In this document: one piece after another, positions 42,501 through 45,167 of the stretch
How positions within the stretch are numbered: the stretch's first letter is position 1
Layout of the letters: every line of letters starts with the position of its first letter
Origin: Saccostrea cucullata
Taxonomy: Eukaryota
Length of the DNA stretch: 64,000 bases
Direction: 5' to 3'
NCBI RefSeq assembly: GCF_032062105.1
Contig: NW_026938676.1
Coordinates: 372,001 to 436,000, forward strand
Position numbers and translations under genes: made by a program
The notes under the pieces: model-generated
Told to the model about the DNA's origin: nothing
Database searches by the model: none
What the model saw: only the letters and a program-made list of their open reading frames with translations

Positions 42501-45167
42501 ACCTACTAAATATTTCTGGCAATGATATTGAATATGTTTCGGATTTTGCTTTTCAAAACTTGTCTGAAGTGAAAGTTTTAGATATGAGAAAAAACAAAAT
42601 AAAGCAATTTTCAGCCAAAATATTTTATGGTCTATCTAAACTGGAAAAATTATTCACGGATTCATACGCATTTTGTTGTTTAAAACCAGGAACTGTGAAT
42701 GTTTGCTTACCAAAGGCAGATGAATTCTCATCTTGCGATGACCTGATGAGAAACGAATTCCTCTCGACCTGTATGTGGATTATGGGATTTTGTTCTTTGT
42801 TAGGAAACCTTGGAGTATTTGTATTTAAAGTATTTTTCGATAAACAAACTTTAAAGAAAGGCCATGGTATTTTCATAACTAATCTAAGTGTGTCAGACTT
42901 TCTAATGGGAGTATATTTGATAATTATAGCTTCTGCTGATAAATATTATCGTGGGAGTTACATTTGGAATGACATTCAGTGGAGAAACAGCGCAACATGC
43001 AAACTAGCTGGCATGCTTGCTACCATCTCAAGCGAAACATCTGTTCTTTTACTATGCCTGATGACAATAGATCGTTTAATAGCCGTCAAATTTCCATTAG
43101 GCCAGTTTAGATTTACCAGAAGGAAAGCTCTCTCATGCATTGGCGTCTTGTGGAGTACTACCGTCGCTATGGCAGCCATTCCGCTGATTCCAGGAGGATA
43201 CTTTGAAGGAGAGTTCTACTCTCGCTCTGTGGTCTGCCTGGCTTTACCTCTAACCAGAGACAGACCTGCTGGATGGGAGTACTCCACTGCAATCTTCATC
43301 ATACTCAATTTTCTACTATTCGTGGTCATTGTGTTGGGACAGTGTATGATATACAGAGAAATATCAAGATCAACTGGCAGTATAAAATCAACTAGGAAAA
43401 CCCAAGACATGGTCATTGCCCGTGGACTCTTCCTTGTCATTTTCACCGATTTCATATGTTGGTTTCCCATTGGAATTATGGGTAATGTGCTGGTCCCGTA
43501 TCTCGTTACATGTCTATAAATGAATATTTTATATTTTAGTTAATAATTATGATTCTAAGCAGTTTATTGACTTTCAGGTTTATTGGCTCTAAGAGGCCAC
43601 GTGGTATCAGGAGAGGTCTATGCATGGGTCGCTGTCTTTATACTCCCAATTAATTCCGCTTTGAATCCATTCTTGTATTCATTTGCTAATTTGAGAAAAA
43701 GGGTGAGTACACCTGAATAAGGACGCTTTTTATTTAGAAGAAAACAATCCATTGCAGCGTTTTTAAAAATGTAATTTTTTTTTTATTTTTGTATATCTAA
43801 TATTATTCAATAAGATAAAATATTCAGAATATTAAATATACTACATGTAATACTAATAATACTACATATTAATTATAAAATATTACTAACATATAGTAAT
43901 AGAAGGTGAATTTTTTTAAAAATTGTTTTGGACATCATTACATATATTTGTAGGTTGAGACGAATATGTCATCAAAAAAGAAAACATCAATGCAGGACCA
44001 CTGCAAGTCTATTTTTAGCACGTTTTAGAATTTTTCTAAGACATTAATTTAAAGAATTTAAAAGGACGATGAATCATAGATTTTTTTTTAAATCATCAAA
44101 AATATTTTTTTTAAATATCTTTCTTTAAGTCATATATGGCGTATTTTTTATATTAAGTTCAGACTAAGTAAAATTCATATGATCTTTCTATTTGTTATGT
44201 AACTTTTTATAAAGATAGGACTTAAGGAAAATTACACAATTTAAATCAATCGATATCAATATCAATATATATATATCAGAGATTTAAAACAAAACCGATT
44301 TATTTCCGACTCTTATCTAGATATAGGGCACAGTTAAAAGACAATTTTACTTTTAAAACGTGGGGATATTTTAATTTAAAATTAGTGAAAAATTTAAATT
44401 GAACGTAAATAACAAAGATTATATAAAAGTACACTTAATCTCGTATTTTTATTTTTAGATCAGATACGCCATATATAGCTTTGAGCAAAGAAAGAAATCT
44501 CAAATCAAGTATTATACAGAAAAATAAATATTTAGCCGTATTTATTTTGTTTTTAGCTACAGCGGAAGCAGTTAGCGTGCTGTGTGACAACAGGTTGTTT
44601 GTGATTGGTCAACACTCCACTGTGTATGTCTCTTTATCCAATCAGCTACAGAAGGGAATAATTACTGTACCGGAAATGAAGCTTGTTGTTTACCGATTGG
44701 CTGAAGCTCTAAAGATTCTACATGAATACGATCTCGTTCATGGAAACTTAAACACAGATCTTGTTTTGCTTGATGTTGTCAACAAGGTATACATTTAAGT
44801 TTGACTATGATTTTTTGCCAGCTTAATAATTAAAAAAGTTGTATATATTCACTTACTGTCATTTGACCACTAATACTTTGCTCATAAGTACGAGTTCGAA
44901 TTATCTCTGTATATATCTATTACGCTAAAAGGAATTTCTAACTTGGCAAATTATGTTCTAAGGAACTGAAATATGTTTAAATAATATATGCTCAGATGTT
45001 CAAAACAAATTTTGTTGTAGAAAATAGAAGACGTGTATATCAGAACTGTGCCTAAAGAAGCTGAAAAAGATGACGAAATCCCAAAAGATATAAAACAACT
45101 GGGGGAAATCACTCTAAAAATGCTCAAGAACTACCATAAGAAAATATCACAAAGCACTGAATGTTAG
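15051..45167 (+). CDS. Gene B (complete, about 2375 aa): giant mosaic GRL101-like LGR GPCR: SP-EGF-ApeC-Kringle-FTLD-FA58C-PAN-CUB-CUB-CTL-LDLa4-FBG(Caspr)-LDLa3-LRR-7TM-pseudokinase fragment
   Basis: 32 exons: 15051-15126, 15435-15533, 16991-17323, 19796-19977, 20091-20262, 20624-20878, 21000-21101, 21185-21292, 21671-21922, 22929-23107, 23566-23718, 24060-24213, 24882-25181, 25647-25852, 26074-26290, 26434-26853, 27027-27233, 27328-27409, 29275-29444, 33262-33426, 33960-34073, 35618-35734, 36560-36763, 37540-37873, 39184-39359, 39854-39988, 41727-41843, 41934-43481, 43578-43702, 43954-44002, 44557-44786, 45021-45167. They sum to 7128 nt with every junction phase-compatible and no internal stop. 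Small symmetric exons could have been missed. Confidence 0.85.
16991..20262 (+). CDS. Gene B exons 3-5: ApeC (apextrin C-terminal) domain
   Basis: [16 protein letters not shown]...MNFCVK...WPKGQYCI...CPQGF...FCCREDG...[11 protein letters not shown]...CQEV...AYCYY matches the ApeC pattern with 8 Cys. Confidence 0.8.
18470..19085 (-). mobile_element. Penelope-like retroelement 3' fragment (degenerate RT C-terminus plus conserved non-coding tail)
   Basis: ORF 18702..18884 (-) [37 protein letters not shown] resembles the PLE RT thumb region. Followed by the family core cagggGATGCTCACTCCTCtatggCACCTGATC. Confidence 0.6.
20624..20878 (+). CDS. Gene B exon 6: kringle domain
   Basis: ECY...[20 protein letters not shown]...ENYCR...PFC...YCIIRKC; six-Cys kringle pattern in a phase 1-1 exon. 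Confidence 0.85.
21000..21922 (+). CDS. Gene B exons 7-9: F-type lectin (fucolectin/FTP)-like domain
   Basis: AIYAVDG...[20 protein letters not shown]...C...[14 protein letters not shown]...[10 protein letters not shown]; matches the FTLD scaffold (AVDG, PWWxVDL, GRYV, EVEV). Confidence 0.7.
22507..22581 (-). mobile_element. tRNA-derived SINE head / tRNA-like pseudogene
   Basis: Reverse strand reads gcctgtgtagctaTAGCTCAGTGGTAGAGCacctgattagtaaaacaggggtccctgGGTTTGATTCCcgggcca, with Pol III A and B boxes but a poor cloverleaf. Confidence 0.55.
22929..24213 (+). CDS. Gene B exons 10-12: coagulation factor 5/8 C-terminal (FA58C/discoidin) domain
   Basis: [21 protein letters not shown]...GRLY...GWCA...PWFMIDL...VQG...[10 protein letters not shown]...TRYIKIHP...CLKAEVIGC. 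Confidence 0.9.
24882..26853 (+). CDS. Gene B exons 13-16: PAN/apple domain followed by two CUB domains
   Basis: PAN: [17 protein letters not shown]...ACSL. CUB1: [23 protein letters not shown]2: [10 protein letters not shown]...ATWKI...[10 protein letters not shown]...IGRFC...MRIEFRS...GQGF. Confidence 0.8.
27027..29444 (+). CDS. Gene B exons 17-19: C-type lectin domain (QPN / WHD)
   Basis: [14 protein letters not shown]...TWSEANQHC...LVSIASKQE...IYIGL...TWSDG...W...QPN...ELC...WHDTAC...YMCE. Confidence 0.9.
27415..27655 (-). mobile_element. Diverged SINE copy with (CAAA)n-like tail
   Basis: ttgtttgtttgattgttg tail next to the donor, body tttttcactcatatggagacg...gatctttttcgtgc, and reverse B-box gaattcgaacc near 27636. 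Family recognition is from memory of oyster repeats. Confidence 0.55.
27708..27930. mobile_element. MITE with CCGTATAGCGG-type TIRs
   Basis: ta|ccatattgcggg ... ccgctatacgg; same family as 52360-52589. Confidence 0.65.
27968..29119 (+). mobile_element. Second Helentron/HINE-like family
   Basis: 5' hairpin AAGGTCTTCCGtcttcaCGGAAGACCTT, (CTT)n(ATT)n microsatellite, 3' subTIR GACGGAAGACCT plus stem-loop CTCGTTGCtcGCAACGAG, ending TCTAGTT. Confidence 0.65.
29856..32539 (+). mobile_element. Helentron-associated satellite-bearing element (outer) interrupted by a nested inverted copy
   Basis: 5' ttttttagctcacctgagcc at 29856; 3' ctcaggtgagcgatgtggcccatgggcctcttgt ending at 32539. The monomer is split at atcttt|...|aaaaat. 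Confidence 0.8.
30837..32336 (-). mobile_element. Nested Helentron-associated element, same subfamily as 12470-14034
   Basis: Starts aacaagaggcccaggggccacagcgctcacctgagcac (reverse complement of the 12470-14034 3' end) and ends ggctcaggtgagctaaaaa. Confidence 0.8.
33034..33237. repeat. Two (TA)n microsatellites
   Basis: (TA)n at about 33034-33111 and 33169-33237; the second ends about 25 nt before the exon 20 acceptor. Confidence 0.95.
33262..41843 (+). CDS. Gene B exons 20-27: LDLa repeats interrupted by a Caspr/neurexin IV-type fibrinogen-like domain
   Basis: LDLa motifs [39 protein letters not shown] and [15 protein letters not shown]. Then TCRDWW...ENGEYLV...VEC...IHH...CSQTVRISC...CSC...CNC...REDAGVIT...LLPV...IGPLIC. 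Then two more LDLa exons. Confidence 0.8.
34699..35447. mobile_element. hAT-type MITE
   Basis: TIRs TAGAGATGTCAA / TTGACATCCCTA, 8-bp TSD ATTGAAAT/ATTGAAAC (7/8), subterminal GAATATTC/TTCGAA repeats. Confidence 0.75.
36699..37340 (+). repeat. 72-bp minisatellite derived from the 3' end of exon 23 plus its splice donor (about 10 copies)
   Basis: Unit cagagattggtggggatttggacagagagagaatggggaatatctcgttagtcttggcttagaagGTAGTTa; donor-like GT at 36764, 36834, 36906, 36947, 37001, 37073, 37145, 37216, 37288, 37335. Confidence 0.9.
38156..39129 (+). mobile_element. Deleted Tc1/mariner-type element
   Basis: TA|CGAGGG ... CCCTCG|TA ends. The internal relic [19 protein letters not shown] near 38630-38690 resembles the mariner HTH region. 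Confidence 0.6.
39724..39798. repeat. (GA)n microsatellite
   Basis: Uninterrupted AG run about 55 nt upstream of the exon 26 acceptor. Confidence 0.95.
41934..43702 (+). CDS. Gene B exons 28-29: LDLa, LRRs, hinge and 7TM (GRL101/RXFP-type LGR core)
   Basis: ORF 41978..43519 plus exon 43578-43702 ([18 protein letters not shown]). The 1548-nt exon is the same length as in gene A. Confidence 0.95.
43954..45167 (+). CDS. Gene B exons 30-32: cytoplasmic truncated kinase-like fragment
   Basis: LFVIGQH...SLSNQL...[34 protein letters not shown]...[13 protein letters not shown]; stop TAG at 45165-45167. Confidence 0.75.

Follow-up and report, generated by a model that had tools for sequence, protein, structure and literature searches.

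Behind the last transmembrane helix of a rhodopsin-class receptor in the oyster Saccostrea cucullata lies a small, catalytically dead piece of a protein kinase. The receptor, gene B (about 15434-45167, plus strand), lies in a window of 64,000 nucleotides, the whole stretch of DNA analysed here, and is an intact, expressed type C2 LGR (GRL101-like) with a giant ectodomain. Its tail of about 115 aa is almost certainly kinase-derived, and it is spliced to the receptor, held under constraint and widely distributed among animals. We give a probability of roughly 0.65 to the joint reading that type C2 LGRs were GPCR-pseudokinase fusions already in the cnidarian-bilaterian ancestor, and that the module of bilaterians, undescribed so far, is a minimal kinase C-lobe core which folds by itself and gives a rhodopsin-class GPCR a built-in domain for signalling or docking. 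The initial annotation knew of no described fusion of an LGR with a pseudokinase, and a literature search, with most subscription journals outside its reach, likewise found no report of one.

Gene B, its class and its transcript

The ectodomain exons (15434-41872, plus strand, boundaries approximate) were located by tblastn with the Ostrea edulis orthologue P0270 and by Pfam analysis of P0270; they encode ApeC, two F5/8, CUB and C-type lectin domains, LDLa repeats and further modules. Pfam, motifs and splice sites define the large exon (41934-43482), which carries the last LDLa, the LRRs (LRR_8, 9e-33), the hinge motif FSSCDDL and TM1-TM6 with DRL and CWFP (7tm_1, 8e-26), while the TM7 exon (43578-43702; splice joints, splice sites and motifs) provides NPFLY and the start of helix 8. 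The DRL, CWxP and NPxxY motifs of the 7TM are thus all kept. Gene B counts as a type C2 LGR because it combines several LDLa repeats with LRRs and a rhodopsin 7TM; the hinge before TM1 is of type C, the best fold match of the receptor is RXFP1 (7tmw), and in the tree the 7TM is nearest the relaxin receptors yet outside type C1. Like gene B, Lymnaea stagnalis GRL101 and arthropod LGR5 are orphan receptors with multiple LDLa repeats, LRRs, the hinge motif and a 7TM nearest RXFP1; gene B differs from them in its far larger ectodomain (ApeC, F5/8, CUB, C-type lectin) and in its folded tail. The 7TM tree, whose deep branches are unresolved, puts gene B into a clade of molluscs (100/99) that is separate from the canonical clade of Lymnaea GRL101 and arthropod LGR5 (100/97), and gene B is a paralogue, not an orthologue, of Lymnaea GRL101.

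Three further exons follow the TM7 exon in phases 0/1/0 and form a single open frame of 141 aa. The linker exon (43954-44002, 49 nt, 16 codons), defined by RNA joints, is basic, Ser/Thr-rich and weakly constrained; the intron behind it is GC-AG, with a GC donor at 44003 where the paralogues A and C have GT. The second exon (44557-44786, 230 nt; profiles, AlphaFold model and conservation) encodes an N-terminal helix, a beta5/hinge remnant, helix D, helix E, the dead catalytic loop and beta7, and the third (45021-45167; model, profile-profile comparison and conservation) encodes beta8, TVP in place of DFG, a short acidic loop, an amphipathic helix F and the stop. The junctions that had been proposed for these exons (43702>43954>44557>45021) are matched by spliced Logan contigs of a close relative, about 94-95% identical, which join 43701>43953, 44000>44557 and 44784>45019 (4 runs from 4 studies, one of them RNA on record and three 'RNA?' guesses). 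Transcripts ending right after TM7 would have spoken against the tail; instead, one contig of 2266 nt extends from the LRR/7TM exon across every tail exon to a point beyond the stop, so that in the close relative the 7TM and the C-terminal kinase-fold domain share one transcript.

A kinase C-lobe core without catalytic residues

Searched with a single tail exon of gene B, Pfam responds weakly (E 0.007-0.1; PK_Tyr_Ser-Thr 0.015, Pkinase 0.022), and individual mollusc and spider tails mostly give no Pfam match, so that the domain is revealed solely by profiles and folds. The tail-family profile A2 gave 867 matches in the PDB, the best 60 of which are all kinases (best single-domain E 2.4e-8), profile-profile comparison led to protein kinases with a probability of 98.6, and the gene B tail scored 19.5 bits on a cnidarian profile, against a maximum of 13.4 among 500 shuffles. 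The AF2 model of the Ostrea orthologue tail (pLDDT 91.6, pTM 0.84) matched kinases and pseudokinases only: the best 50 matches of the VIA fold search belong to these classes (Z to 12.4), every match of the atlas search is Pkinase (TMq 0.66-0.73), and all rows listed by Foldseek against the PDB are kinases with E of about 3e-3, though none reached E<=0.001. Both kinds of search thus agree with the kinase fold that had been read from the letters. As to the donor family, JAK, NEK7, titin, VRK3 and GCN2 score alike against the tails and none is singled out; further profile matches in the oyster's own genome are ordinary kinases with no 7TM nearby.

The core consists of helix D, helix E, the catalytic-loop segment, beta7-beta8 and helix F, in keeping with the ePK fold. 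The losses listed by the initial annotation were all found: HRD is HGN (44739-44747), the catalytic-loop Asn is Leu, DFG is TVP (45045-45053), and the Gly loop, VAIK, helix C, helices G-I and the activation segment with APE are absent. Only 14 residues separate the DFG position from the helix-F Asp (45087-45089), compared with about 36-39 in intact kinases, and the dead module, estimated before at roughly 110 aa, measures about 115. On anatomical grounds, catalysis and ATP binding by the tail are excluded.

Conservation was counted over 108 mini-type receptor tails. The polar residues conserved most strongly are not catalytic ones but the helix E His (92%; 44721-44723 in gene B) and the helix F Asp (87%), a pair with a structural role in kinases (H158/D220 of PKA), while HRD Asp, loop Asn and DFG show no conservation. 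Helix F is amphipathic, with hydrophobic residues at D+1, 4, 7, 8, 11 and 12 in 87-99% and mostly charged ones at D+2, D+3, D+9, D+10 and D+13. The conserved positions mostly form the buried core, and surface conservation is modest. Several mollusc tails contain 'DFG' strings; these fall within helix F and do not represent the Mg-binding motif. Among the top profile and fold matches are the pseudokinases JAK JH2, VRK3, PEAK3, PAN3, RNase L and the guanylyl-cyclase KHD, which share the kinase fold without catalytic residues; these, however, have both lobes and the helices as far as I, whereas N-lobe, activation segment and helices G-I are all missing from the bilaterian module.

Constraint, distribution and history of the fusion

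Two tandem paralogues on the plus strand carry the same tail. In paralogue A the exons (7559-7607, 7793-8022 and 9495-9632) have the same lengths, phases and module as in gene B; the 5' part of paralogue C fills 49181-64000, and the 7TM, with an identical tail of three exons, follows past the window (G000:C20813, about 448.9-451.9 kb). Among the three, dN/dS of the tail is 0.15-0.19, far from the value near 1 that would have contradicted a kept module and close to the 0.14 of the LRR/7TM exon; the linker exon gives 0.5-1.05 over its 16 codons. Just 3 of at least 67 GRL101-like loci of this genome have the tail, and since many paralogues lost it, it is dispensable for receptor function in general.

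The mini-domain also stands 3' of TM7 in other molluscs, an annelid, a nemertean, a priapulid, chelicerates, a myriapod, hemichordates and echinoderms, and thus is kept in at least 8 phyla and at the same position in more than 100 receptor sequences (the sampling was without sponges, placozoans, ctenophores, hydrozoans and tunicates). In sea anemones and corals the tail is a two-lobed pseudokinase, found in these anthozoan members only, which passes the Pfam PK cut-offs, carries the VAIK Lys, helix C Glu, HPN and helices H-I, and ends in a PDZ-type motif. Some of them (P0378, P0391) retain not only Lys and Glu but also the catalytic Asp and Asn, while the activation segment and DFG Asp are already gone from the anthozoan tails. 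Fuller relatives, which had been suggested as a check, therefore do exist; an intact one with HRD, DFG and APE was not found among the relatives searched. On a profile built from cnidarians only, hemichordate tails reach 53-66 bits, against at most 41 for the ordinary kinases tested, and they share the DFG-to-helix-F deletion with cnidarian tails, and a graded series links the weak tails to the Pfam-positive domains. Strongly degenerate versions occur in echinoderms and some mites, and complete losses are repeated across lineages. The mini form as a single group received 92 SH-aLRT in a quick tree, as against 20% of bootstrap trees in a careful one.

Because anthozoan relatives keep a two-lobed dead domain, the fusion is probably older than the cnidarian-bilaterian split and shrank afterwards. 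In the history that we consider quite probable from sequence comparison, a type C2 LGR acquired a kinase behind its TM7 before that split; activation segment, helix G and DFG Asp were lost early; the domain stayed two-lobed in anthozoans; most bilaterians lost the N-lobe and helices H-I; and it vanished wholly from canonical protostome GRL101 and from many lineage-specific copies. The module is an old feature of type C2 LGRs, not an oyster peculiarity. The earlier statement that GRL101-type tails are unstructured is valid only for the canonical GRL101 of protostomes and for type C1 receptors. LGR tails have been set aside as poorly conserved (PMC4079206).

The nearest known architecture is that of the GPCR-bigrams, in which a cytoplasmic protein-kinase-fold domain follows the 7TM in one chain: GPCR-TKL in oomycetes, amoebae and ciliates, GPCR-TKL/K in choanoflagellates, and GPCR-TK in choanoflagellates and sponges (PMC6033456, PMC12716839, PMC10463195). 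Their kinases are recognisable and presumed catalytic, whereas gene B is an LGR with a dead domain, about 40% of a kinase domain, and has no predicted catalytic TK or TKL domain. Among holozoans such fusions were found only in choanoflagellates and sponges, and the 7TMs of protist, choanoflagellate and sponge fusions do not cluster with metazoan GPCRs (PMC12716839), while a few TK-type cases are reported in sea urchins and cats (PMC10463195); the gene B family, in contrast, spans Cnidaria and Bilateria.

What the tail may do

We lean towards a docking or scaffold module. The receptor would signal through G proteins, as other LGRs do, and the mini-domain would be a non-catalytic, nucleotide-free docking module held beside helix 8; the pTM of 0.77 of the AF2 model of 7TM plus tail gives no more than a hint of a fixed orientation of the two. 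The exposed basic face of helix F may set the module on the anionic inner leaflet or on an acidic partner, and the surface of helix D/E and beta7-beta8 may recruit or exclude regulators (GRK/arrestin, G protein, trafficking scaffolds).

The tail might instead act in cis on its own receptor, either capping the G-protein site in an autoinhibitory or allosteric way or mediating receptor dimerisation; regulation in cis is known from the pseudokinase domains of JAK and of receptor guanylyl cyclases. The linker from NPxxY to the module is short (mostly 20-60 aa) and kept across phyla, and in the same AF2 model TM7/helix 8 runs on as a long helix into the module; however, the weak constraint on the linker exon argues against cis action and the PDZ-type ends of cnidarian members point to scaffolding, and we hold this alternative to be possible but clearly less likely than docking. 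A structural relic without any signalling role, kept to avoid a harmful misfolded remnant or to aid folding or export, appears unlikely: it would fit the buried conserved positions, the repeated losses and the degenerate versions, but a stop after helix 8 deletes the domain without folding cost, as in tail-less paralogues, and yet it is kept across phyla at a dN/dS near that of the LRR/7TM exon, with a conserved charge pattern on the exposed face of helix F. It is highly improbable that the tail is half of a split kinase, or still binds nucleotide or catalyses to some residual degree, with a separate N-lobe protein completing it in trans, since, intact core fold and the residues kept in P0378 and P0391 notwithstanding, the catalytic positions are unconserved in the mini-type tails and no activation segment or helices G-I are left for substrate binding. 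The least credible view, that exons of a neighbouring gene or pseudogene were joined to the receptor or that the kinase resemblance is chance, could draw on the single-exon Pfam and Foldseek E values and the GC donor, but fails against the spliced contigs, the exon structure shared by three paralogues, the same position in so many receptors, the graded series and the shuffling control.

A folded intracellular domain is unexpected in a rhodopsin-class GPCR. GRL101-like receptors have been tied to IGF-like signalling as a hypothesis (10.1101/2021.04.15.440029) and, as a group, to snail resistance to schistosomes (PMC12297450). The mini-domain is small and well modelled, and thus should be expressible and usable as bait, which would give a handle on these orphan receptors. 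The deletion series, from two-lobed dead domain through partial N-lobe and bare C-lobe core to loss, may define the smallest kinase sub-structure kept folded by evolution, and the gene B family would add to GPCR-kinase fusions, thought confined among holozoans to choanoflagellates and sponges, an old and widespread animal case in the family nearest the relaxin receptors.

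Receptor array and tail exons of gene B

The 64-kb window (GC content 33%) holds three large receptor genes, A, B and C, in a tandem array. Their extents were obtained by mapping of the Ostrea edulis orthologue P0270, a protein with ApeC, F5/8, CUB, C-type lectin, LDLa, LRR and 7tm_1 domains: gene A lies upstream and ends at 9632, gene B spans about 15434-45167, and gene C begins at 49181 and runs past the window edge. The 7TM identity to an O. edulis protein is 79%. Exons were spliced by window coordinate for the frame check, dN/dS, trees and tail scoring, and the spliced tail of gene B also entered local sequence comparisons as query, seed or target. 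After the TM7 exon of gene B (43578-43702), the tail exons at 43954-44002, 44557-44786 and 45021-45167 maintain a single frame throughout, in agreement with the three in-frame exons of the initial annotation. The intron donor at 44003 (44003-44004) is GC, giving a GC-AG intron, while the corresponding donor of genes A and C is GT and their tail exons are of identical lengths.

The junctions put forward initially (43702>43954>44557>45021) have matching splice joints (43701>43953, 44000>44557 and 44784>45019) in contigs from four runs of four studies, all of them from a relative about 94-95% identical, with three of the four runs being RNA by guess only. Introns are removed exactly at these joints, also in the runs guessed as RNA, and one joint coincides with the GC-AG site of gene B. 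A single 2266-nt contig spans the LRR/7TM exon to the stop; the relative's transcript runs past TM7.

Several repeats accompany the array. At 36559-37340 the 3' end of an LDLa-bearing exon recurs behind that exon in several degenerate tandem copies (G-rich, GC skew 0.28), which may be an exon-derived intronic minisatellite. Dispersed repeats, intronic and downstream, lie at 44121-44484 and 45160-45700 and occur in many unrelated transcript contigs. Downstream of gene C, a tandem array with units of roughly 120 bp occupies about 8950-9750 of locus L008.

Kinase ancestry of the tail

The kinase assignment is based on the alignments A1, A2 and A4; database searches and structure predictions took single exons or public orthologue proteins as input. 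The main tail exon of gene B alone matched PK_Tyr_Ser-Thr at E 0.015 and, against the PDB, kinases only. A 12-row profile reached VRK3 at 5.6e-7, and a 54-row profile gave 867 PDB matches, the best 60 of which were all kinases. The structure models represent the O. edulis orthologue, and for its tail (P0122:2218-2348; 49% identical to that of gene B) AlphaFold2 predicted, at pLDDT 91.6 and pTM 0.84, an N-terminal helix, helices D and E, a beta hairpin and helix F, in this order. With this model every Foldseek row was a kinase (E only about 3e-3), VIA-align gave 50/50 kinases or pseudokinases (Z reaching 12.4; the internal deletion accounts for the rmsd of 4-7 A), and the structure atlas returned Pkinase clusters at TMq 0.66-0.73. 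A language-model search with a scallop tail likewise gave kinases; the model of 7TM plus tail reached pLDDT 88 and pTM 0.77.

The kinase fold proposed in the initial annotation was thus recovered by PDB profile, Foldseek, VIA-align and atlas alike, and its account of the losses agrees with our alignment. Gene B has HGN for HRD and Leu for the catalytic-loop Asn; its DFG position is aligned to TVP, and its activation segment is deleted, with 14 residues between the DFG position and the helix F Asp versus 39 in P0246, an ordinary kinase among the matches. The fuller relatives that it sought were found in anthozoans, whose tails have an N-lobe and helices H-I.

Across the aligned mini-type tails (the C-lobe-core form) catalytic positions are without conservation; the helix E His (92%), helix F Asp (87%), helix F Gly (89%) and hydrophobic core are retained, His and Asp being the PKA structural pair H158/D220. 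Helix F is buried in intact kinases. Among the mini-type receptor tails (108), charged residues predominate at the positions of its Trp (D+2) and Tyr (D+9), D+9, D+10 and D+13 are Lys/Arg, and the opposite face is 87-99% hydrophobic; the pattern is as would be expected of a remodelled stand-alone domain.

A further degenerate kinase exon, with HME for HRD, lies elsewhere in the same genome (L017, G000:C9143:220882-221070, minus strand), with no 7TM within 1.5 kb and a second kinase-like exon about 17 kb away.

GPCR-kinase fusions are known from oomycetes, amoebae and ciliates (PMC6033456, PMC10463195), and also from choanoflagellates and sponges, to which the tyrosine-kinase type is described as restricted, with all fusion types called uncharacterised (PMC12716839). 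LGR tails were set aside, their conservation being poor (PMC4079206). The GRL101 passages of the literature examined do not mention a kinase-like tail, and combined literature searches on GRL101 or GPCR with pseudokinase found nothing, though a mention outside the literature covered is possible. Since automated Pfam labels give a kinase match on some cnidarian, annelid, amphioxus and scallop entries, the signal is present in databases but unremarked.

Distribution and origin of the domain

The mini-domain follows TM7 in molluscs (oysters, scallops, mussels, clams, abalones and a limpet), the annelid Dimorphilus, the nemertean Lineus, Priapulus, arthropods (spiders, a scorpion, mites, a tick, a sea spider and Strigamia), hemichordates and, in degenerate form, echinoderms. 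It is absent from type C1 receptors, from the canonical GRL101/LGR5 of protostomes and from many lineage-specific copies, and was found at only 3 of at least 67 GRL101-like loci in the S. cucullata genome (lower bounds). The at least 64 further 7TM loci there, 31-43% identical and spread over many contigs, apparently lack the mini-pseudokinase and form a large oyster expansion; many have open frames of 700-900 aa and lie in clusters.

Anthozoan LGRs (Nematostella, Actinia, Oculina, Montipora, Acropora, Stylophora, Dendronephthya) carry tails of 280-370 aa, in which the N-lobe (beta3 Lys, helix C Glu, HPN) is followed by HNN/HND at HRD, GGF/GNF at DFG, a short interval before helix F, helices H-I and frequently a class I PDZ-type end. 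Several exceed Pfam kinase cut-offs, and their profile matches kinases of the PDB at about 1e-10. Anthozoans show an expansion of the family; P0378, P0384, P0390, P0393, P0395, P0411, P0415, P0421 and P0428 are such LGR-pseudokinases, of up to 3300 aa and with class I PDZ-type C-terminal motifs. Amphioxus P0438 retains the part from helix C through helix F and has DFS at DFG. The hemichordate canonical GRL101 of Ptychodera flava (P0380) has N-lobe remnants and DFA, where the sequence ends (perhaps an incomplete model); this N-lobe-containing remnant suggests a secondary loss of the domain in Lymnaea GRL101 and arthropod LGR5.

The alignment between the mini and anthozoan profiles covers 116 columns at a probability of 98.6. 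Against a profile built from cnidarians only, hemichordate tails reach 53-66 bits, above the ordinary kinases tested, and the activation-segment deletion is common to anthozoan and bilaterian tails. This evidence favours a single fusion before cnidarians and bilaterians diverged. With type C1 receptors as root, the 7TM tree places gene B within a mollusc mini-type clade (100/99) and recovers anthozoan full-type (100/99) and canonical GRL101 (100/97) clades; its firm support extends to these clades but not to their deeper order or to the number of N-lobe losses.

Proposed function of the module

The type C hinge motif is retained in the gene B receptor, as are DRL, CWxP and NPxxY, and its 7TM model is nearest to RXFP1, so that G-protein signalling would be the default expectation. 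The module itself cannot bind ATP in the usual manner because the N-lobe and DFG are absent, and it cannot hold a substrate because the P+1 loop and helix G are absent. We consider it probable (about 0.6) that it is a docking module adjoining helix 8. That it regulates the receptor in cis or dimerises it seems to us rather doubtful, and a passive relic would be quite improbable. Among genes A, B and C, which includes the comparison with gene A suggested initially, the dN/dS of the module is 0.15-0.19 (Nei-Gojobori; dS 1.0-2.4, near saturation) and not near 1; by the same method the LRR/7TM exon gives 0.14, its TM part 0.09-0.11, and the 16-codon linker exon 0.5-1.05.

As a docking module, the tail could be placed on the membrane by its basic helix F face. 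The docking groove of MAP kinases is formed by helix D, helix E and beta7-8; following this lead, the same elements retained in the tail may provide a candidate docking surface.
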